Below, in pieces: positions 13,466 to 27,637 of a stretch of 32,000 bases of DNA; position 1 is the stretch's first letter, and every line of letters starts with the position of its first letter. The translations under genes and the position numbers were made by a program. The notes under the pieces were generated by a model. The model ran no database searches and had not been told where the DNA came from. It worked only from the letters and a program-made list of their open reading frames with translations. Origin of the DNA: Wallemia ichthyophaga EXF-994 (taxonomy: Eukaryota > Fungi > Basidiomycota); NCBI RefSeq assembly GCF_000400465.1, contig NW_008806276.1, positions 90,001 through 122,000 on the forward strand, given 5' to 3'.

Positions 13466-14162
13466 TAGCTTTCAGGAAACCTCAATTTACTGTAAGTAGC
13501 CTGCTGTCTCAGATGTGCCACTTTTTGACAACTCACAGGGAAATTATCGAGGCTACGCAATGAAGACGAGAGAAAACTCGAGCAAATGGGATCGCGAAGA
13601 ACAGCGCAACTAGGCCATCTAATTAAATTAGCAAAATGATTCTATATACATACTTGATTAGCTGAATTTCTTTCAAATGTTTTACAGTTTGTTTTTCATC
13701 TACAGTACACGATACTAATGTTTTTTTTCTTGAAGTTGCAGCTGTGTACTTTTGAAAAGGTGTTGTTTAATAAGTTTCTGACGATGCTCTTCGAAATCGT
13801 AGTCAATGCGCTTGAACCTTTTTTTTTATGCTAGTGAACACCACCATTGTCGCATCTACTAATCTCAATCCCACCCGCACTCTAACTCCAGAACAAGGAA
13901 TTGATTGACAGATATCTAAAGATTGTCTGATTATATGGCTGGCGAGGGATATAGCAGATGTACTCCACAGTCGTTGTGAGATCTTACTACTAAAATGTGT
14001 GATTTTCGGTAACAGAACTACTCGAGATCTCCCTTTGTAAACATCAATTTAATAGGCTGAAAACTCTTTAGAGCGGCCAACGCAGTCTCCGCAAAAAGCA
14101 AAAGTGAGACATATAAATTATCGTAAAAAGAATACAAATTGAAAAGCGACGATAGCGCCTAT

Positions 14163-16595
14163 CTAGTAAGCCAATGTAGAGTTGTCTCTGCGCCAGTAAC
14201 GGTGACCAGCTATAGCTTGCGCGTAAGCACCTGCGAAAGTGGCGGCGTCGTAAGCACCGTGTGTTAATTTCTCAAGCAAACCAGTGTCTTGGTTTGTGAG
14301 GTTAGGCGCGACGACAACGCCATCTTGTACTGAGAAGCTCTTGCTATCTTCGATCTTGTTCGTGATTGGGATGAGCTTGGATGCCCATTCAGCGCTGCTG
14401 CCTACAACAGCCAGCGGCTTGTAGTGTGCATAAGCTTCAATGCACCAGTGCTTTGGTCTGCCCATTTGCAAAGTCTTCTGGTATGTATCGTTGCCGTCTA
14501 AGAAAATCAAGCTGTCGAAGTATGTTGATCTGGCTAACTCAAATGTGAATTGAGTGTCGAGCTGCTCGCCGTTCTTGCCATAAGTTGGTCCCTTTCTTGT
14601 TCCGATCACTGCTACAATATTACCTAAAGAAGAAAAGGCTTTCTGAACAGCGACTGCTTGTTGATAGTCGAAGCCATCTGGTGCAATCATCGCAATCAAT
14701 CTTCCCTCAGCCTTGAATGTGTTGTTCTTGGAGAGCATACTGATTGGATTGGAGCCGTCAGTCTTTCTGCCATGGTTCTTCTTTACTGGCTGACCGACGT
14801 CAATGCCGAAGTTGCTGGCGATACTCTTGGCGAGGTCATAATCAATGTGCTTGAAACGCTCCATCATACGCTCTTGAACACCTCTGTCATCACATCTACC
14901 AATTTCGAAAGCTGCCGTGTTAACGTAGTTGTTCTTTTCGACGTCAGATAATGAATTGTAGTGGAGAGTGGCTTGATCATAATATTCGAAGAACTTAGGG
15001 CCCAGATTTCTCTCACGTACACCTCCAACCTTGTATGGTGGATGGTGGAGACCACCCTGAGCAACAGATGCCGGACCAGGGTTGTTGTTGAATCTGTTAG
15101 GATAGTAGTTTGGTCCACTAGGGATAACTTTGCTTGATGAACCGTCTCTGAGAGTGTTCATAAATGGACACGCCTGAGGAATTGGCTGATTGATCGGTAT
15201 TTGGGAAAAGTTAATGCCACCAAGTCTAGAAATCTGTGTGTCGAAGTAACTGAAGTTACGGACTTGAAGCATTGGGTCATCCGAGTAATCCTGTTAAGTG
15301 TCAACATTTTTCAGGAAATGTCTTCCAAAACCTACGATGCCTGGTACAATGTTGTTGGTACAGAAAGCCACTTGTTCGTTCTCCGCAAACTGATCTGTGA
15401 CTGTTCTGTTCAACGTCATTGTTCCTACCCATTTAATTGGCACTTCCTCTTCAGGGATTATTTTTGTGCAGTCAAGCAAGTCAAATGAGAATTTGTCTTC
15501 GTCCTCCTCAGGAACGAGCTGTACACCAAACTCGTACTTGGGGTAGATGCCCGCGTCAATGAACATATAGAGATCGCGGCGGAGGAAATCAGGGTCCTGG
15601 CCGCCGAGCTTGAGAGCCTCATCCCAGCACAATGAGTGGTGTCCAAGATGAGGCTTCCAGTGGAACTTTACGAAAGTGCGCTTGCCTTCCTTATTGACAA
15701 AGACAAAGGTGTTTACACCAAATCCTTGAATCATACGGTAAGAGCGGGGAATCGTCGCATCGGATAACGCCCAGGAAGCCATGTGCTGATATTGTGTGAG
15801 TATATCTCGATAAAATCTTCTTAACTCACAGTAGACTCTTCGCTGAGGGAAATAAAGTCCCAAAAGTTGTCATGTGCCGTCTGTGCTTGCGGAATGCCAG
15901 TACGAGGTTCAGGTTTAGCAGCGTGGATTAGGTCAGGAAACTTCATACCATCTTGTACCTGTTGGTTTGTAAGTAAACAATCTCAAAACGTGGTTTAAAC
16001 TTCCGAAAAACGGTGCAAGTGAGTTACCGACAACATCCCAATTTCCTTCTTCTGTGTAAAAGCGGCTCGCGAAACCTCTTACTTCCCTTGCTGTCTCAGC
16101 TGCACCGGAGCTTCCGAGAACGGTTGAAAAGCGCACGAACATAGGAGTTTCACTTTCTGTGTCATTAAGGACCTTAGCGTGCGTAACATCTTCCAAGCTG
16201 GTGTGCAATTTGAAGAATCCATGTGCAGCGTCACCGCGGGCATGAACGACACGCTCTGAGATGACGTCAGTCAGAAAAACCAAATGCTCGGAACGCACCT
16301 GGGATTCTCTCGTGGTCAAAGTGCGAGACCTTATCGCGCATGATAGGATCGCTGAGAAGGTAAGGGCCTCTGCGGCCGGCCTTCATGCCGACTTCAACAT
16401 TATCAGCCTTGGCGCCGAAGGTGGTGCGGTGGAAGGCATCTCCCTCCGTAGGGATGTCCCTGGTGGCGGTGGCGAGTTGCTCGGCCTTCGAGTTTGCGTT
16501 GACGGGTTTGTCGGAATCGTATACGGACCTGCAGGAAAGTTATTAGATAGGGCGATACGTTTGCACATTACCCACATTATTATTCGTAGTTGGAG
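14163..16595 (-). CDS. Large-subunit monofunctional heme catalase with C-terminal DJ-1/GATase-like domain; start codon uncertain (about 16577-16595)
   Basis: [15 protein letters not shown] (distal His), [11 protein letters not shown] (catalytic Asn), [22 protein letters not shown] (proximal Tyr), and C-terminal [13 protein letters not shown] domain. Introns of 43, 46, 44 and 45 nt, plus an uncertain first intron. No signal peptide seen. Confidence 0.93.
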
Positions 16596-16640
16596 AAGAA
16601 GTCATGACAAATCGGCGAAATTTATTGGTGCAAGAAATCA

Positions 16641-16648
16641 TGACGTCA
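16641..16648. promoter_or_regulatory. CRE palindrome TGACGTCA upstream of catalase (second copy at 16262-16269 in an intron)
   Basis: Exact ATF/CREB consensus seen in the sequence; function is inferred. Confidence 0.4.
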
Positions 16649-16756
16649 ACTGGGTGCGATGAGTGATCAGCAAGTCGCTTTGAGGGGCGTGGAGGTGGAA
16701 AGCGTATACAGCATGTCTAGCGTGCTCAGTAAGTCGCAGTCTTGCACGCCACTCGC

Positions 16757-17132
16757 ATCTGTGGCAATCCGTTCGCTGGAACATTTAGCCGGTTTATCCA
16801 GATTAACCAATTTCAGGCAGAACAGAAAATCAGCCAGATTTTTATCGATATGTGCTTGTTTGCTCTACGCACTACATTAATAGGTGCAAACAGACCTAGC
16901 ATCTCCTCTCACAAAACAAATGGAGAATTTTCTCATGGTAATGAACGTCAGATTGTACTCTAAGTGATGTGAGAGGTTTGGGTGGTGAATGGATTGCGGG
17001 CTTTTTTGGCCTTAGTCACTATGCCACGCAAATCTCCAATCTGAAGCTACCCGCTCGCCCAAACGTTTAGCCAGTTTAACCAGATTACCCAGATTCAGGC
17101 AGATCAGAAAAACAGCGAGATTTATAAGCATT
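16757..17132 (+). repeat. Diverged direct repeat in the catalase upstream region (16757-16850 and 17039-17132, offset 282 bp)
   Basis: Cores tttagccggtttatccagattaaccaatttcaggcagaacagaaaatcagccagattt and tttagccagtttaaccagattacccagattcaggcagatcagaaaaacagcgagattt match at 50/58 positions. Confidence 0.85.
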
Positions 17133-17247
17133 CTTGATTACTAAAATCGTATAGCACATTAAAATAACGCAAGTAGCCCTGATATCTCTTCACATCAAGT
17201 ACGCGCAATTTTTTCATACAGCTGTAAATATCAAATTACACGTCTAT

Positions 17248-19182
17248 TTAGCCTACTTTAGCTTTCTTAGTGTGAGTAATGTCTGTGCGATCCTGCAAAT
17301 GCTCCTGCGAGCGCTTATCTCCTACATTCTTGCGCTCGTCTCCTGTATTTTCGTGCTTGTCTTCCACTTTTTCATCTTTCTCCCCTTGCTTCTCAATCTT
17401 GTCACCCCTTGCCGGCCTTGCCAATGGACCCCAGTTCGCCGGGTTGGCCTGATACCGTCTGATTTTCTCCTTGGAGTTGAACAGATCGACGACTTTCTGG
17501 TTATGGGTGAGATCAGCGTCGATGCTGTGAGTGTATCAGAGCAGATCACGCGCAAAAGCTCACCCTACCGCGGCTCCTTGGTGAGCAAGTGTCTTGTAGG
17601 CGAGCCCTCCTTGACGTTTTCCAGCTTGACGGGATGGGACAGCATCCACTTGCGCATCATGTCATGCACGGCGCTAACAGGTGCATCTGTCTTGATGGAC
17701 CCGGGGAGGGCGTGCGAGCGTGAGACGGCGTACCCCGCGTTAACGAGGCCGGACCTGTAAGGGGGTGAGACAATCAGTCCTTTCTAGCAAACCAAAATGT
17801 ACCCAACAGTCACCATAGAGGGCGCCGTCAGCTTCATAGCGCTCGCGACGCTGTCTGTGGTGAAGTAGAACGGCTCGTCGAGCTCGTCGTGCGCTGTGCT
17901 CACCATCCCCTTCATACGCGTAGCCGTACCGTAGGTGCCCTCCTGCGCCTGCGTGACGTGCTGCAAGAGGCGCTGCGTAAAGGCTTTGTTGTGCAGCTTG
18001 TCGATCCACATGGGGCCGTTAGTGTGACAGTGCGCGTGACACTCGCTGCATCGCCCACTCGCATCCACACCCGAGCCTACACCCACGCTCTGCGCTGCCT
18101 GGAACTTGCTCGAGACATTTCCCTTCCCGCTCACTTTCTCCACTACCCTCCCAAAAGGCTGGATGGTGTGCGCGCGGCAGAAAGAGCAAACATGCACACT
18201 CCCCGTTTTACTAAACGCCTTTTTGGTCTCGGCAGAGCCGTCGTGGATGCGCACCCACATGCGCACATAAAAGTCGATGGAGAGCGACATCATGGGCTCG
18301 ATGTAGCGCCCGTACCGCGATGCCGACTGGGAGATGGAGTTGAGGATGAGACGGAGTGCCTGCGAGTGTGTGAGTGTGAGTTTGAGTGAGCATCCCACCA
18401 CCATGCGCCTCACTCACCGCCTCGTGGGTGTACTCGGCGCGTACAGGCGTGCCGCCGTAGTTGGAGAAACACTTCTCCGGGTAGTTGGTGCCGGCCATGA
18501 CGGCAGTGTCGGTGCAGGTGATGCAGAGAAGACCCCCACTGCTAAGCGACTGCACAGCTGCATCAATGAACGGGGCTGCTGTACCGTATGGATCCAGGTC
18601 AATGACGTCGAATTGCGCCTTGCTGCGGTGCTGGTACATGAGCGCACTCGCATCGCCTTCCGTCACGTTTACCCGCCCTTGTAGCTGGTTGTACGCGACG
18701 TTTTGGCGGATGGCAGCGACGGCGTCGGGAGAAAAGTCGTTAGCGTAGATGCGGTTGGCGTTGGGGATCTCTTTGGCGTATCGGATGGCTCGCAAGCCGG
18801 TAGCTGAGAGAGCGTCGAGAATGCTGAAATTGTGCACCCAGTCTGGGTTTTCGATAGGCTCTCTCCGCTTTCCGGTGCTGTTACCGGTACTGTTACGGTT
18901 GCTGTTCTTCTCCAGCCTCTGCTTGAACTTGGCAGACTTCTCGTCGCGAACGATCTCGGACCAAACTTTGATAGCGGCTACAGACAGGTCCCTATTAAAC
19001 TCCTGTATGGGATTAATGAATGCCTTGTTGTCGCTCTTCTCGGTAATTGGGATCAGTATTTGGGCTGTATTTTCGCTTGTGAGTTTGTGATTTTCAGGAA
19101 GAGCGGGTTGAGTGGGAGTTGTGGACATTATACGGGCTTTACTGATAGACCTATTTACACAGCAGCTGCTCCTACTCAGCAT
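17248..19182 (-). CDS. TRM1: tRNA (guanine26-N2)-dimethyltransferase; 4 exons; two in-frame ATGs (19182, 19128)
   Basis: FINPIQEFNRDLS, ILDALSATGLRAIRYAKE, FDVIDLDPYG, GGLLCITCTD, SLSIDFYVR, C-x2-C pairs, GPMWIDKLH and YQANPANWGP. Three GT-AG introns; stop at 17248. Confidence 0.96.
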
Positions 19183-19247
19183 GCACTACTTGGTAGCGAG
19201 AAGACAACGAGGACACGATAGAAACTAAAAAAATCAACAAATCTATT

Positions 19248-20280
19248 CTAATACAACCCTTCCAAGTAATCCGCGCTCTTCTTTGTGCCAGCGAATGGTC
19301 TTTCTTGTACTTTTTCGTTTGGTTTGGGGTTAGGTGTGAGGTATGGTGCGATAACGTCGTCAAATGAGGGCAATTGCTCTTTCTTCTTCTCCACACCCTT
19401 CTTAGCAGCTCCCTTAGACAAGCCAGCTGTGATTATGCTACGGATCGAAACATAGTCGAGTGGCTTGTCATCTTTGCTATCTTTCTTACCATCCTTCTTC
19501 TCAGACAGGCCTTCAAATGGCTTGAATTCAGCAGCTTCCTTGGCCTGCTTGTCGGCAACCTGCTTCATTGAGCCGCGTGGGTTGTCAATCTTACCCAAAT
19601 GAGACAGAATATCACCACGCGTAAGCATACCGTGTCTGCCGGTGCCCTGGATAGCGCTTGGGTCTGATATACCATTGTCGATCAAGAGACGTGAGACAGA
19701 AGGGAATAATGGTTTGGTGGATTCTACGTGGGTGTCTTTAGGTGTAGGTTCGGGTGTGCTTTGTGCCGGTTCTGGGGTTGGTTGTGGTGTTGAGTCTTGC
19801 TTTGCACCTTCTGACTCTCCCTGAGAACTTTTTGCACTCTCTGCCACGGCGTCCGCGGCTGAGATATCATCGCCTTCCTCACCGAGCACAGCGATCGGAG
19901 CACCAACAGGAATACCTTTTGCGCCGTCGTTGAGAATGATCTTTGCGAGAACCCCGTCATCCTGGGCTTCGACGTCGATGGTGGCCTTATCAGTTTCGAT
20001 TTCCAACAAAACGTCGCCTGCGCTGAATTTGTCGCCTGCTTTAATCTTCCAACCAGCGATACCACCTTCAGTCATAGTAGGAGACATACTGAGAAATGCT
20101 GTTAAATTGGCATATAGACTATAGTTGCTTCCTCACGCTGGAAAATCGAATTTGTTGAGTACATTCGTACATCTAGTAGTGCTTAGTGACCGAGTGAGCG
20201 TGGCTTGGGAAACGTGCTTAGAAATATCAAATTGATTAGTATTACCACTTACTGCCCCTCCTCAGCGCCATTCTCGTCAT
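19248..20280 (-). CDS. PDX1: Pyruvate dehydrogenase complex protein X (lipoyl and E3-binding domains); 3 exons
   Basis: Spliced mitochondrial-type presequence MTRMALRRGTTLTRSLSTTR, then FPAMSPTMTEG, lipoyl motif EIETDKA, and E3-binding motif PSVSRLL..IQGTGRHGMLTRGD. No acyltransferase domain. Confidence 0.85.
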
Positions 20281-20461
20281 TGGAATCATAATCATCGTCA
20301 GAGTGTAAGATGCAAGAAGGTTATCTGGGACTTTATTGAAAATTAGTATATTTCATATTTAAATAGTAGATATTATTACAGTTAATACCTTCAAACCCCT
20401 TCAACACCCCGTCAAGACAAGAAAATACATGGTATGAAACTTATTATAGAAATGCTCTTAT

Positions 20462-21422
20462 CTAATTAAGGTACTTCCTGATAATATCAACTACGTTTAA
20501 TGCACGCTTGAGAAAGTTTCCTGGACGCGTTCTATCTGGCTCATCAGAAAAACCTTTGACATCATTATGATCTATCTCGCAGATAAGTTCCTTCGTGAGC
20601 CAGAAAGGAACACTGCGATACTCGTATGGCTTTTGGAGAAACACTCTTGCTCCTCCAACTGGCAGATGGACCTTTCTACAACAGACATGGCTATACTAGC
20701 CCTGTATACTGACTTTGTGCACTTTAATTCACGCCAATATCCCTAAACAATCTTGTCATTGTGATTGGAATGCTTTTGTAGATGTCAATCATATCTTCTC
20801 TCGTCTGAAATTTATCAACAAGCTCCGAGGAAAAAAAGTAATCACCCACCAGTGAGATTAGCGAGATGTCTATTTTTTCAGTAGGTCTGATCCCAAGGAG
20901 TCTCGGCTCATCTAAAACATACGGACAAACGCCGAGCTTTTCGACAATCGCGTACAACATCTTCTTAATACTCATTTTCCTTCTCGCGCTGTTCCTCATC
21001 GAGAATCCCGAAATCCTCTCTTGTCAATTCTTCGCGTGTACTTCTCACTATTTTCCACTTGCACATCTCGATTGCGAGCTCCAAATGCATCGAATCCTTC
21101 ATCCCACAATAGACTTTCTAGTCGATTGACGAGAACCGGAATGACTGCAGCTGATCGATTGCGGATTTTGAAAATGAATTCTTTCTTTGATCAATACTCG
21201 CGACAATTGGTGGCTTTGAGAAAGTCTTTCAACGTAAACAGTAAATCTGCATTCCCATTAGACGCGTAGATGTAATAATCATTGGATGCTATAACGACGA
21301 CGGGCTTTGTAGTATCTACGTTGAGTCTTGTAACATCACGGCGCAGGCTATTGCGATGCCATCTGGCCGTTGGTGCGTCGGCCGGAAAATTGGACTTTAG
21401 TGTGCGAGTTATCCTCAGTCAT
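20462..21422 (-). pseudogene. Tandem family copy A (decayed)
   Basis: Homologous blocks IASNDYYIYASNGN, LFTLKDF, IVEKLGVCPYVLDE, IPITM..GVN, WLTKELIC and GNFLKRALNVVDII. In-frame TGA at 21191-21193, further stops and frameshifts, and an intron at the same position as in copy B. Confidence 0.8.
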
Positions 21423-21671
21423 ATTGCCTAGAGTGGGGTTTTGATGGTCAGCTGATTGGGTTGGAATGTGGGGTGTGAGGATGTAAGAAATCGAGAGAAA
21501 AAATAATCTGGACGAGTGAGTAGTTGGTCAGGAAAGCGGTTATCAATTAAGCTCCCATGACTATCATCCTTCCTTAGAACTCCTCAGAAGAGATAGAAAT
21601 ATTAAATCATAAATCCAAGACAAATACAAGAAAAAGCAAGGTATAAAGCTTCAAACTGGATATACTCTCAT

Positions 21672-22663
21672 TTAGCTCAATTTCTTCCTAATATTCTCCA
21701 CCACGTTCACAGTTCGCTTCAGAAAAGTACCAGGATAGCAGTCACTGGGGTAGTAATTGTCTGGCTTCTCAGAGATACCATTCACGTCGTGATGCGCATG
21801 CTTGCAGTAGAACTCCCTCGACATCGCAATTGGGATTTGTTCTTCTTTGGATAACATCGGAGGAAACGCCGTCGTCTGTCGGACTGGCTGCTCTGCTTTT
21901 CCACCACAAACATAGCAAATACTGGTTGCACATTTAGACTGAATGCTCTTCGCATTCACACCCATCCCCTCAAACACCGCACTAATACTGATTGGATGAG
22001 ATCTGGGGAAATTTGGAAGATTTTCTTCGTCCTGTTTTCGTAAAGTAAGTAAGAGTCACTAAGGTTAGTCTTACCCACAAGCAATAGGCATAAAGAGATA
22101 TTCGGATACTCTGTATACCTAAACCCGAATGGTCTTAGTTCGTCTAAAACAATCGTACAATCACGACCAAATTTTTCGATGATTGTACGCACTATTTTCC
22201 TCATCATTGCATCCTCTTTCCTGTTTTGCTCATTTTCCAGAGCCAACACCTCCTTTTCCATCAATTCCTCACGTGCACCGTCCGGCAAATAATGTGATCT
22301 GGGACTCCAGAAGGAAGTATTCTTTTCTTTTTCATATAGTGATAGTGCTAAGGAGGTGTCTAGCCACTCGAGTCTATGATCAGGAAGTAAAAGCTTCTTT
22401 TTCTCGCAGTAATCGTGGCGTTCTGTTGCCTCATCAAAGTCTTCCAACGTGAAGAGTAGGGAGTCGTTACCATCAGATGCGTATATTTCCTTATCGTTAG
22501 ATGCTATCATGAGTATATGCCTTGTATTGTCAATTTTGAGTTTCATCACTTCGTCTTTCAAATCATCATTAAGCTTCCTGGCTGACTGTAGGTTGACTGT
22601 ATCTGGGAGAATGTAGATGAATTTGAAATCTGAATTCAAGGCTTTGAATCTGAGGAGCGGCAT
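21672..22663 (-). CDS. Tandem family copy B, intact 314-aa protein of unknown function; exons 22663-22079, 22031-21672
   Basis: A 47-nt GT-AG intron (22078-22032) joins ORFs 21956-22663 and 21672-21977 into one uninterrupted frame homologous to three neighbouring copies. Confidence 0.8.
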
Positions 22664-22929
22664 TGGGCTGAAAGATAATGGCTGTCAAGTGATGAGAAAT
22701 ACAAGTGAGACAATCAGGAGTTACACATGACTTTGAATAAACTGATGAGAATCTGGCTCCTTGGGAGAAAACATGTAGCAACAAAGACAGCAGAATCAAC
22801 AAATTCATCACATTAATTATTATATTACTCACACATCAAACATTTTCAGGAGTGTGAAAATTTCAATTCATATTTGTAAGACAAAATGCAAGGAATGAAG
22901 CTTGGTGCGGGATACAAATATTCTTGTTT

Positions 22930-23893
22930 CAGGTGGCTCTTAATTTTATCCATTACATTGACTGCGCGCCTGAAATAGGTACGCGGGAGGGGTCTGACTG
23001 GTTCATCAGAGATGCAGTCGACATCGTAATGGTCTTTCTGGCAGTAGACCTCCTTGGTAAGCCAGAGTGATAATCTCTGTGCTCGATTGATTTTAGGTGA
23101 AAGTATCTTACTGGTTACGCTGGTGTTTTGACCTTCTCAGCATACACGTGGCAGAGACTAGCAGCAGCTAAGGAAATGGTGCAATTTATCTCGACGCCCA
23201 TATCCTGGAACACACCCTTATTGTGATAGGAGGGGTTTTGGATACGTCTCGAAGATCTTCTGTCTGTTTGAGAACGTCAACAGTACATTGTACTAGAGGA
23301 CGCCTGCCACGTTTGATAGGAAGAATATGTTGAGATATTCAGTAGTCCTCCTACGGAATGGTCTCAGCTCATCTAAAATGATCATGCAAGGGCCAAGCTT
23401 GTCAACAATTTCGTCCGCTATTTTCCTTACCTCTACCTTTTTCTTATGGACCTGCTCCCTCTCAAGAATTAAAGCCTCGTCCTTCGTTATTTCGCCGCGC
23501 ACACTACTCACAATTTCGCCTTGCCAACTTGAAGTGCAAGAGCTGAAATTCTCTTGTCTCTTTTCCTGACATTCTTCTATAAACTGATGAGATGGAAAGG
23601 GGAAACAATCTAGCTTGTCGAGTGTGGATTTCGATAATAAGAACTCCTTTTTTCTATAATATTCCGGACGACCAGTAGCTTTGTCAAAGTCCTTCAACGT
23701 AAACAATAACTTTATATTCCCATTAGACGCGTAGATTTCATAATCATTGGATGCTATAGCGACGACGGGCTTTGTGCTGTCTACTTTGAGTCTTGTAACA
23801 TCACGGCGCAGGTTTTTGCGATGCCATCTGGCCGTTGGTGCGTCGCCGGCTCAGGATTGAAATACAACACTGCGTGGGAATTTTGGGGAACAT
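22930..23893 (-). pseudogene. Tandem family copy C (frameshifted)
   Basis: IASNDYEIYASNGN, FTLKDFDKAT, IVDKLGPCMIILDELRPF, GVFQDMGVE, WLTKEVYC and TYFRRAVNVMDKI occur in different frames. 1-nt deletions near 23845 and 23216 and another shift near 23120. Confidence 0.8.
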
Positions 23894-24057
23894 TGGAATA
23901 GAGGTGGAGGTGGTTGACTGATAGGGCCGAATGTGGGGTGTGGGGGAGGCTTAAGAAATTAGTAAAATAATGGAAGTAGATTGAAGATGTTTCAACAGTA
24001 AAATAAATACATTTCAAACACTGTAGCAGCAAAAGGATAGCAAGTCGAGTAAGCAAA

Positions 24058-24990
24058 TTAGAGGAAATCATTTATAATATTCTCAGTAACCACGAAAGTG
24101 CGGTGAAAGTATGTTCCGCTGGTACCACAGAATATTTCCCACTTTCTAAGGACAGCGAGTGAGTGAATGTTGCTGCAGTGGAGGTCATTGTAACATCGAT
24201 TCTCTTCGCTAGCAAAACACAGTGGCACTTGCACTCTATTCCCGCGCATGGGACAGAAACTAGCTGATGCTCTGGTATCACTCGTCTTCACCTCGACACC
24301 CTTCTCCATGAGGGCATCTTTGATAGTATAAGATGGGATCTGGCTTGAGTTAGTGGGGTTGCTTTATTAGCTATTGAAATACCTCTTTTAACACCAACAC
24401 ATCGAGATACCCATCTAAGCGAACACCAAACTCACATTGAACATCAAAAACAACAACACCCCTGCCAAACACACTGTCAATTTCGTCTGCCAACTTCCTA
24501 AACTCCTTTTTCTCCTTGTCCGTCTGTTCAACTTCAAGGAGATTGATAAAAGGCTGTGCGAGGTCGTGTTTGGTTCTTTCATCACAACAAGCCGCCAGGC
24601 TTCATTTTGTGACTGCAGATCAGCGTGCTGATCATTTGCGTGAAAATTGCGCGGGGATTTGCTGTATGAGTCGAGGCATGCGAGCGTGTAGTCGCAGAGT
24701 TGTAGCTTCTTGTTTGATCGGAAGCATTTGCGATCTACTGCCTCATCGAACTCTGTAATAGTGATTCTAGGCGAGATATTGCCGCTTATGGCAAAGAACG
24801 AGACTTTGCACGTGTTAATTATTGCGCATAGGGCAGCGCCGTCCAGCTTTAGATTTAGCTCTTCAATGTGTGCCTTTTTTCATCGGCAAGCTCTGCTGCT
24901 TGGATCTTTTTGCCGGCGTGGGGGTTCCAGATAGAGAAATACTACATTGTGGTTGTGTAGTTCTACAAATGAAGAGATTTTTGCGGACAT
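24058..24990 (-). pseudogene. Tandem family copy D (most diverged; premature stop and frameshift)
   Basis: MSAK..NHNVVFLYLEP, TGA at 24880-24882, FFAISGN..TITEFDEAVDR..KKLQLCDYTLACLD, a frameshift near 24590, RKLADEIDSVFGRGVVVFD, an intron at the shared position, and GTYFHRTFVVTENIINDFL*. Largely missed by the ORF track. Confidence 0.7.
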
Positions 24991-26346
24991 TGCGTGTGTT
25001 GCTGATCTGTGTGGAAATTCGGGACGATCGTGGGAGAGCGAGTGGCTTCAAAGTTTGCAGCTGAGTGAGTTTACTGGGATTTTATATTGATGTGAGTTGT
25101 TAAATTGGATTCTTTTTTATCTGCCACAATATCTCATCGTATCGTTGAGTTTTAGCGTGGTCGATGTAGTGTGTGCGGTATTTGTGTTCAGGCTGGCGTT
25201 AGAAAATAGGTAAGAACGTGTCATTTATACTTTGTTATTATTCTTATTTCAAGGGTATTGTGGGTCGACTGAGCCACCGGTGCATCTTATACATCTCTGC
25301 GACACCACCCTAATACGTGCAAGACACTGATAAGTGGCTGGAGATTCAAATCAGCTCCATAATCAACTATTTTAACCACTCACATTTTATTATATGCAGC
25401 AATACCGTGATAATTGCGTGATTCCAGTGATGAGATGGTGTCTTACTGAGTGAGATTCCAGGATCCACTATCAAATAGAGTAACGACATGTTAGATAGCG
25501 CAACCTTTGAAACTACCACGTCCACTACAATTACCACTTCAAAGTACCTTCACAGCTGTGTAGCTGTAGCCGTCGACTACGACCTGACTGCAAGGCACAG
25601 CTAGATGCGAGATAGATGTATCCGATAAGTCTAAAAGGGGTGCAAGATGTATCCTCAACGCATTTATTTATGTTCAGGGCGGAAAATTTAGCGAAGAATT
25701 TCCTCCGAGATACAATGGGCTATTAAAATTGACTTGAAAGAGAATAAGACGGTGATAGAAGCAATTTCAGGCTATTTGGCTGGTTTAGACAGCAAATCCG
25801 ACTGCTTCCGTTTCAGATTTTGACATGAAGACTACAATTTGAGAAAAGGAAGACATGTCAGATCTGTGACAGATATCCCAATTACAGCTAAAGCAGTCCC
25901 CTTAACCTAATCAGTCCCTTTATAATCATCTTCCGCCTCTATTTCAACCTCTCACCACGACCGCATCAGACATCAACGGCACTGGCGTTGTGACAGATTC
26001 CACTCGCAAAGCACAGACCTTCTTTACATGCACCACATCGGTAAGGTCCCGTCTTAACGAGCGCCCAGACACCCGAAATGGAAATGCGAGTACTGTGTCA
26101 GTCGTCAGTTACTTCGGTGTGAAGGTATGGTATGGCATTAAACGTCAGGATTCTGAATAAATGCTCACAACCGATCCATTGATCTAACAATATAATGCAC
26201 ATTTCCTTTTTTGTCTACCGCTAATCTCAAACCTCGGAAGATTTGACAGAACCATGACGGTACTCATATAGTGGAATTGGATGTGCCTAGGACAAGTCAG
26301 ATTTAAACCACCAACTCGATATAATCCTCTTTAAGTTAAATCCACC

Positions 26347-27637
26347 ATGTCTGCAGAATTCGCAAAGTTGATTACTAGAGCTGGAGAAGAAGCATGTGAG
26401 TGATCATGTAAAGGAGTGTGTAGTGATTGACAGTATTTGCAGCTGTAAATTGCGGTAGCAAATACCATGACAATTCATTACAAGGGTGAGTCGTAATCCT
26501 CCTCTCAGCGTACCTCCCTCACAAATCGCAGTCTTCGCATTGGTGCAATCTTCATCGTAATGGCTACGTCAGCCTTAGGCACACTCCTTCCAATCGTAAC
26601 CGGTAGAGTAAAAGGGCTGGGATTGCCCAAGATATTCTACGATACAATTAAGGTGTGTGTGGTTTTCTGTTTTCTTATGATGTCACCGCTCACCAGCCAT
26701 AGTACTTTGGCTCTGGGGTTATTGTTGCGACTGCTTTCATTCACTTGCTCGCTGAAGCCTTTGAGAAACTCACCGATCAGGAGTGTTTGAGTGGTGCTTG
26801 GAATGATTACAATTGGGCACCAGCTCTCGCGGAAGCTGCAGTATTTGTTAGTGGAAAGTAAGCCGTTAAAAGGTCTTTACTAACCTCTAACAGTTTATCT
26901 TCTTTGCTGAATTGTGGGCTTCAAGACTCGGAAACAAGTACCTCGAAAGACGCGGGATGAACTACGACAATCACGGCCATGACAATGTTGGTGGTATAGC
27001 AGGATCTCATGGTGCAGAAACCTACACACACACCTCTGATTCTCACCCACAAGTCCATGACGCTCCAGCTACCACTATGGCTGATCAGAAATCAACTGAG
27101 ACAAACGACGTGGAGAGCGTCCACTCGATGGGCAGTTTCGGATACAACACCATGTCAATGATTACTGGTGTAGCCATTCTCGAGTTCGGTGTTTTGTTCC
27201 ACTCTGCCATCCTTGGTCTTACACTCGCAACCTCGTCATCGGATGAGTTCAGGGTGCTGCTCATCGTCATTGTGTTTCATCAAATGTTTGAAGGATTAGG
27301 ATTGGGCGCTAGACTTGCGGAGCTGCCTGTGAGGCAGACTTGGATTCCGTACACTGGAGCCACCTGCTATTTCCTCATCACGCCTATCTTTGTCGCTATT
27401 GGTTTGGGTGTTAGAGAGACGTACAATTCTGGATCTACTGCGGCTCTCATCACCACTGGTCTCCTGAACTCTATTTCTGCTGGTATTTTGCTCTACACCG
27501 GTCTGGTAGAATTGCTGGCGCACGACTTTATCTTTAGCTCGCATATGAAGAAGGCGTCCGACATGTATGTCCTGTATGCTGGCTTCTGCGTACTCCTCGG
27601 AGCTGGCCTGATGAGTTTGCTCGGTAACTGGGCGTAG
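26347..27637 (+). CDS. ZRT1: ZIP family zinc/iron permease (Zrt1-like); 5 exons
   Basis: Spliced LRIGAIFIVMATSALGTLLP, KYFGSGVIVATAFIHLL, His-containing loop, LEFGVLFHSAILGLTL, FHQMFEGLGLG and GILLYTGLVELLAHDF. Confidence 0.93.

Follow-up and report, generated by a model that had tools for sequence, protein, structure and literature searches.

The 32,000-nucleotide (nt) stretch of the genome of the salt-loving fungus Wallemia ichthyophaga EXF-994 analyzed here (contig NW_008806276.1, positions 90,001 to 122,000 of the forward strand; hereafter the window) carries a tandem array of four paralogous genes, all on the minus strand, between window positions 20465 and 24990. Read 5′ to 3′, the units follow one another as D, C, B, and A with spacers of 180 to 260 bp, and only copy B is intact (Table 1). 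As described below, the array probably represents a nuclease-dead remnant of Fanzor1. Fanzors are transposon-borne RNA-guided nucleases and form the eukaryotic branch of the TnpB/Cas12 lineage. When the spliced product of copy B was searched against the window by tblastn, copy C was recovered at an E value of 2e-39 (33% identity over 324 amino acids [aa]), copy A in three collinear pieces whose best pairs scored 2e-16 and 4e-13, and copy D in three collinear pieces at 9e-6, 0.017, and 0.062. A profile built without D retrieved the three D pieces in the correct order among 1212 six-frame fragments (6e-8, 1e-6, and 3e-3), and the same search found no further decayed copies elsewhere in the window. 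An earlier note on this DNA had proposed four same-strand units, one of them uninterrupted, that share an intron position and, in A to C, a 3′-flanking motif; each of these features was confirmed.

Removal of a 47-nt intron with the sequence elements GTGGGT, ACTAAC, and CAG joins the two exons of copy B into one open frame of 314 aa. An intron lies at the same position in A, C, and D, as well as in the intact copy of a second species introduced below. The product of copy B had a single match among 5.8 billion clustered proteins, a W. ichthyophaga “hypothetical protein” of 314 aa with 99% identity, and the gene is open and annotated as a 314-aa product in at least 14 strain accessions. Routine annotation does not recognize the family, as the earlier note had stated: an hmmscan of five proteins (B, u2, P0018, P0011, and P0012) against Pfam gave nothing above noise, searches of PDB sequences with copy B and with the family profile A4 returned nothing relevant, and word-indexed homologue searches recovered only Wallemia proteins.

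When 1.84 billion representatives were searched exhaustively by HMMER with the family profile, 12 proteins were recovered, eight of them gene-caller fragments of W. ichthyophaga copies A to D and one a spurious match to a Coemansia coiled coil (E = 7.5e-4) that we discarded. Two of the remaining three lie on a 93-kb Logan contig, L004, from a second species. The flanks of L004 are syntenic with the window (DUF155, S13, and ZIP on one side, protein X, Trm1, and catalase on the other) at 72 to 76% DNA identity, or 90% for S13, and its array comprises five same-strand units, among which only unit 2 (u2, 309 aa) is intact. Unit 4 of L004 (12342-12875) matches the family over only about 45 residues of the KFG/VLD region and lies within a 177-aa open frame whose remainder is apparently unrelated; here, a partial unit may have been joined to foreign sequence. 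The third protein comes from a 1.27-kb metagenome contig (L005, positions 1-1275, sample SAMEA5410244), on which the 3′ half of one unit precedes the 5′ half of another, so this organism also has a tandem arrangement. The first of these units is interrupted by a stop within the conserved “LE.EQ” stretch, and its intron may be read through in frame.

The members fall into two subtypes, both of which occur in both species. Type I comprises B, C, A, L004 unit 3, and the second unit of the metagenome contig, and type II comprises D, L004 units 1, 2, and 5, and P0018; on the metagenome contig, the type I unit follows one of type II. The surviving copy is of type I in W. ichthyophaga and of type II in L004, where unit 3, the positional counterpart of B, has decayed. 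Protein identity between the species is about 30 to 50%, compared with the 72 to 76% DNA identity of the flanking genes. A different paralogue survives in each species, and decay has occurred in both; the birth-and-death turnover suggested by the earlier note is real.

The relationship of the family emerged from profile-profile comparison. The family profile A4 was aligned by hhalign to a 9-sequence profile of fungal Fanzor1 proteins, taken from Additional file 3 of Bao and Jurka (2013) and trimmed to the RuvC half. The match reached 93.5% probability with an E value of 2.4e-7, and a second run gave 94.3% and 1e-7. It spans about 125 columns, of which the CxxC motif is only a small part, and with upstream-extended templates the alignment covered residues 1 to 314 of copy B against residues ~315 to 613 of SPu-1, with the order of motifs collinear throughout. 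Reversed and 20 column-shuffled templates, used as controls, scored between 10 and 16 (P ≥ 0.25). The match persisted when the query was limited to the intact or open members B, u2, and P0018 (8e-7) and when the Spizellomyces sequences were left out (7.5e-8). Its score of 59 exceeded the 44 obtained by the same method between Fanzor1 and TnpB; a thin bacterial TnpB profile matched the family at P = 0.004, which is suggestive only, and yeast Fanzor2 did not match it (P = 0.12). In support of this, when all six-frame fragments were ranked by a Fanzor1 hidden Markov model (HMM), a family exon came first, in L004 as well as in the window.

We also built an AlphaFold2 model of copy B from family sequences only. 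Its elements follow the order of three strands, helices, a long helix, a strand, a helix, a strand, and further helices. In a Foldseek search against the PDB, the top four matches were the Spizellomyces Fanzor SpuFz (E values of 8e-4 to 3e-3), followed by Cas12f, the ISFba1 TnpB, Cas12i, Cas12X, and Cpf1, interspersed with ASKHA and pantothenate kinases. The ASKHA kinases have the RNase H-like fold in common with these nucleases. Collectively, the profile comparisons, together with the predicted fold, showed homology of the family to the C-terminal half of Fanzor1. Because both approaches place the family as a truncated Fanzor1 derivative, it is transposon-derived rather than of unknown origin. 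The earlier statement that no function can be read from the array is thus superseded. A match to a characterized family, which the earlier note had named as a ground for refutation, has in part been found, but it is a remote one and the protein cannot work as a Fanzor, for the reasons that follow.

Each unit encodes the last strand of the WED domain, the RuvC-I sheet with its helical insertion, a “KFG..VLD” strand at the canonical RuvC-II position, a “V.V..ID..A.S.C..C” strand with the zinc finger, and the RuvC-III helix “NR.V.V..NI”. Copy B thus covers roughly the final 300 residues of Fanzor1; the N-terminal ~315 residues, the WED/REC half, are absent, and the alignment starts at about residue 315 of SPu-1. 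In Fanzors, this half binds the guide RNA and reads the target-adjacent motif. The short spacers leave no room for it between the units. The active site has also been altered. In SpuFz1, two Mg ions are held by D383, N385, E541, and D606 (Saito et al. 2023), which correspond to D378, N380, E536, and D601 of the SPu-1 consensus. At the position of D383, copies A, B, and C have Ala, the first two units of L004 have Thr, and copy D and L004 unit 5 have Asn. The Asn at the position of N385 is retained in most members. The position of E541 is occupied by Ser, Ala, or Thr. At that of D606, B and D have Thr, u2 and P0018 have Asn, and A and C have Ala. Because the positions of E541 and D606 are robustly aligned, the family was shown to have lost at least two of the three catalytic carboxylates. 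B, u2, and P0018 retain the zinc ligands in the form CxxC...Cx3H, which aligns with invariant Fanzor1 cysteines, the last ligand being His instead of Cys. An RNA-guided nuclease can be excluded, since the protein has neither a WED/REC half nor a catalytic triad.

Every member carries an Asp at the canonical RuvC-II position (IVLD, VVLD, or VVFD; around 22145-22156 in copy B), a place taken by Gly or Pro in Fanzors (Jiang et al. 2023). The “alternative” glutamate of Fanzors is lost in the family.

The disruptions of copies A, C, and D proved to be genuine. The decayed copies carry between two and six lesions each. Besides the lesions listed in Table 1, copy D has lost the second Cys of CxxC, although its 3′ half is still open and spliceable; copy C lacks an in-frame ATG and shows a 1-nt phase error at the junction of the intron and exon 2; and copy A has a broken N terminus and at least three frameshifts. 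Five other, independently assembled W. ichthyophaga strains were 99.1 to 99.7% identical over 4.9 kb and had every lesion in common with EXF-994. Sequencing indels, which the earlier note had named as a possible source of the disruptions, were therefore ruled out, and comparison of strains confirmed real decay in A, C, and D next to an open B. Indel differences between strains are confined to A, C, and D, with three additional indels in copy A of one strain and none in B. In copy B, four nonsynonymous changes (I60L, A62T, Y125H, and V306E) and no synonymous one are private to strain L007, which shares V220M with strain L008.

Table 1. Positions of array features (window coordinates unless L004 is given)
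Feature	Position	Strand	Remarks
Copy D (type II), pseudogene	24061-24990	minus	stop, frameshift, tblastn, profile match
Copy C (type I), pseudogene	22921-23880	minus	tblastn, stops, frameshifts
Copy B (type I), sole intact gene	21672-22663	minus	open spliced frame
Copy A (type I), pseudogene	20465-21440	minus	tblastn pieces, stops, frameshifts
Copy B exon 1	22079-22663	minus	open frame
Copy B intron (47 nt)	22032-22078	minus	splice yields open frame
Copy B exon 2, including TAA stop	21672-22031	minus	open frame
Copy A intron	20805-20849	minus	same position as in B
Copy C intron	23264-23310	minus	same position as in B
Copy D intron	24340-24382	minus	same position as in B
L004 unit 2 (type II), intact, 309 aa	L004 10001-10976		second species
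L004 unit 2 intron	L004 10607-10655		same position as in B
Type I 3′ motif (AAGCTTYATWCCTTGY.TTTT), copy A	20417-20442	minus	
Type I 3′ motif, copy B	21626-21651	minus	
Type I 3′ motif, copy C	22881-22903	minus	
Copy D lesion, TGA stop	24880-24882	minus	
Copy D lesion, frameshift	between 24562 and 24583	minus	
Copy C lesions, stops	23851-23853, 23115-23117	minus	
Copy C lesion, further frameshift	near 23120	minus	
Copy A lesions, stops	21191, 20965, 20724	minus	
A/C shared tract (210 nt)	21171-21380 (A), 23636-23845 (C)	minus	84-90% DNA identity

The divergence of the copies bears a record of their earlier constraint. In all old pairs of paralogues and orthologues, the proportion of synonymous differences (pS) was saturated at 0.56 to 0.91, while that of nonsynonymous differences (pN) was 0.21 to 0.46. 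Since pN lies well under the saturated pS, the copies, including those that are now dead, diverged as protein-coding genes. By these ratios the family was shown to have been under purifying selection at the protein level for most of its history, and the two to six lesions per dead copy would be recent relative to the divergence. Only the tract shared by A and C was near neutral, with a ratio of nonsynonymous to synonymous rates (dN/dS) of 0.59. The rest of A and C is saturated at synonymous sites, and the tract points to a recent gene conversion between the two pseudogenes.

The array is not in a transposon now; it occupies a fixed host locus with conserved synteny. According to the strain annotations, and read in gene orientation, it comes after genes for a DUF155 protein, ribosomal protein S13, and a ZIP transporter and before those for pyruvate dehydrogenase protein X, Trm1, and catalase. 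Six strains and the second species have these flanking genes in common, the array adjoins the ZIP transporter and protein X genes in at least two species, and the copies are tandem, not dispersed. The syntenic array was shown to be older than the species split. Positions 20000-26500 contained no inverted repeats, the conserved 3′ flanks yielded no consensus RNA fold, and the array had no Rfam match. The 3′ motif that follows the type I copies is present in the second species too, and in C and L004 unit 3 it reads in frame as a hydrophobic tail (..SFIPCILSY and ..SIIKPCIFLSL, respectively). For this reason, the motif would most simply be a former C-terminal coding tail that was lost from B through an earlier stop. 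The GC content of the array (42.7%, against 47.5% for the whole window) is in line with the “AT-richer island” of the earlier note, but the dip is modest and other stretches of the window are equally AT-rich.

Taken together, we consider it probable that the array is a host-fixed, nuclease-dead derivative of the C-terminal half of Fanzor1 that is restricted to Wallemia and is now being lost. According to this scenario, a Fanzor1 fragment would have become a host gene in a Wallemia ancestor and would have been duplicated in tandem, giving rise to two ancient subtypes and further copies. Selection would have kept the gene for a non-catalytic role, most plausibly nucleic-acid binding via the dead RuvC cleft and the zinc finger, and parallel loss would now have left one open copy in each of the two species. 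Several observations weigh against this reading, some as to the origin of the family and others as to its present function. Regarding the origin, scores of sequences against the HMM reach only about 9 bits, the N-terminal third is not significant against Fanzor1 alone (P = 0.55), and the profiles are thin (effective numbers of sequences of about 2.5 and 3.8), with translated pseudogene pieces making up half of the family rows. The assignment of Ala, Thr, or Asn to the D383 position therefore rests on the collinear extension of the alignment, as the N-terminal RuvC-I part is not significant by itself. The AlphaFold2 model is poor (mean predicted local distance difference test score of 51, template modeling score of ~0.3 to its matches), and a fold match alone would not count. 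This low confidence, and the failure of Pfam, PDB sequence, and HMMER searches among billions of proteins to provide a link, would suit an orphan family unrelated to Fanzor whose likeness stems from chance and a generic zinc-finger motif. However, profile-profile matches at P ~1e-7 to which CxxC contributes little, control scores that never exceeded 16, an independent fold search that picked the same family, and motifs that are collinear along the whole protein make such an origin very improbable. Still less credible is a nuclease with a rewired site built from the invariant RuvC-II Asp (IVLD) and the Asp or Glu of the “SN[DE]” turn. An Asp occupies that position in all members, unlike in Fanzors, and the RuvC glutamate can move, as it has in Fanzors themselves (Jiang et al. 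2023), but the RuvC-III Asp, which lies in a robustly aligned block, is Thr, Asn, or Ala in every member, and the guide-binding half is missing.

As to present function, no orthologous copy is intact in both species, and the survivors are different paralogues. Three of the four copies are dead here and four of the five in L004. Among six strains, copy B harbors 9 nonsynonymous and 5 synonymous single-nucleotide polymorphisms (SNPs), giving a pN/pS of ~0.6, and one strain has a radical change (V306E) in the RuvC-III-like helix, the most conserved helix. SNP density in B (15/kb) is near that of the spacers (17/kb), with 5/kb in the dead copies C and D and 21/kb in A. These small numbers fit a presently relaxed constraint on B. 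They would also be expected if the whole array, B included, were a functionless relic in which B has merely not yet been struck, a reading that we hold to be somewhat unlikely. B is open in all of the at least 14 strain accessions, and its zinc ligands, splice sites, and core motifs are all intact, as are those of u2; a copy free of lesions in each species would be unlikely if all copies had lost constraint together, and the old divergence speaks for purifying selection.

If the gene was kept, it may have acted in a conflict, an idea of the earlier note with which the data are compatible. The RuvC domain of TnpB-type enzymes contributes to binding of the guide-RNA scaffold, as seen in published TnpB structures. 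A dead RuvC/zinc-finger protein could have interfered with active Fanzor1 elements as a decoy or a dominant-negative inhibitor, for instance by binding up their guide RNA or by occupying their sites; an arms race would have driven amplification and diversification, and decay would have followed once these compact genomes had lost the transposon. This course of events would agree with the tandem amplification, the two old subtypes, the rapid divergence of the proteins, and the parallel recent decay. However, there is no full-length Fanzor in the 32-kb window or at the loci of the relatives, to which the search was limited, and no structured RNA was found in the array, so that we regard this role as quite unlikely. 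Slightly less doubtful, although still on the unlikely side, is the broader proposal that the array represents the first Fanzor taken over by a eukaryotic host, that is, a guide-less, nuclease-dead, locus-fixed, and long-selected RuvC/zinc-finger family that acts as a Fanzor inhibitor or has a new nucleic-acid-binding role, with B still functional.

If the derivation of the array from Fanzor1 is true, a Fanzor fragment can live on as an ordinary host gene over long periods, selection can retain the RuvC half by itself after the loss of its catalytic residues, and the locus shows the birth, diversification, and death of such a gene family. About 15 Wallemia “hypothetical proteins,” including a 620-aa chimeric reference model, are pieces of the array and due for re-annotation. 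This reference-strain model, J056_003017 (window 21672-24600, minus strand), combines the 3′ half of D with most of C and the whole of B, joined via invented introns, and small separate hypothetical proteins in the strain annotations are further fragments of A, C, and D. In the neighborhood, Trm1 and catalase are fused into a 1297-aa model in the L001 and L002 annotations (13536-18502; about 14150-19200 of the window) and kept separate in that of a third strain; the fusion is probably an annotation artifact. We found no literature record of the locus tag J056_003017, and neither domestication of Fanzors nor Wallemia together with Fanzor was mentioned in the literature that we searched. In the supplement text of two Fanzor surveys, which may not cover their full catalogues, neither Wallemia nor Basidiomycota is listed.

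The closest known system is Fanzor1 itself, represented by SpuFz1/SPu-1, Rhizopus ROr, Phycomyces PBl, and Allomyces AMa. Like the family, these proteins are fungal, are encoded by intron-containing genes, and follow the order of a WED strand, the RuvC-I sheet, a helical insert, “KFG..v.v”, “G..V.LID..TS..C..C” with the zinc finger, and the “NR(D).AA..N” helix. In contrast, Fanzor1 proteins have 620 to 930 aa and possess the N-terminal WED/REC half, the three catalytic carboxylates (the first of which is substituted in the family according to a weakly supported part of the alignment), and a Cys as the last zinc ligand. The family also differs in having no terminal inverted repeats or transposase, in its fixed syntenic head-to-tail array, and in the lack of any detected guide-RNA-like structure at the array. 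The clustered paralogues, numerous pseudogenes, rapid divergence, and lineage-specific survivors recall fungal gene families in genetic conflict such as the wtf drivers of fission yeast, of which the same is true; this is an analogy only, with no relation in sequence or fold. The short Fanzor2 genes of budding yeasts (SCe-1 with 350 aa, AGo-1, and ECy-1; Bao and Jurka 2013) are likewise small fungal genes that occur in one or a few copies with no recognizable transposon around them. Unlike the family, whose profile they did not match, they have kept the catalytic motif “DRD.NAAKNI”. In bacteria, the TnpB lineage has repeatedly been captured by the host, both as CRISPR effectors and as dead RNA-guided repressors. 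As described in the literature, TldR, Cas12k, and Cas12m, like the family, derive from this lineage, no longer have RuvC catalysis, and have left the transposon life cycle. TldR-like proteins are bacterial, have a demonstrated function, and lie next to a guide RNA gene, whereas the family is fungal, has a putative role, and has no such gene detected at its array. TldR-like proteins have kept the half that binds the guide RNA and recognizes DNA while their RuvC domain was trimmed or inactivated; the Wallemia family is the reverse, having kept the RuvC half.

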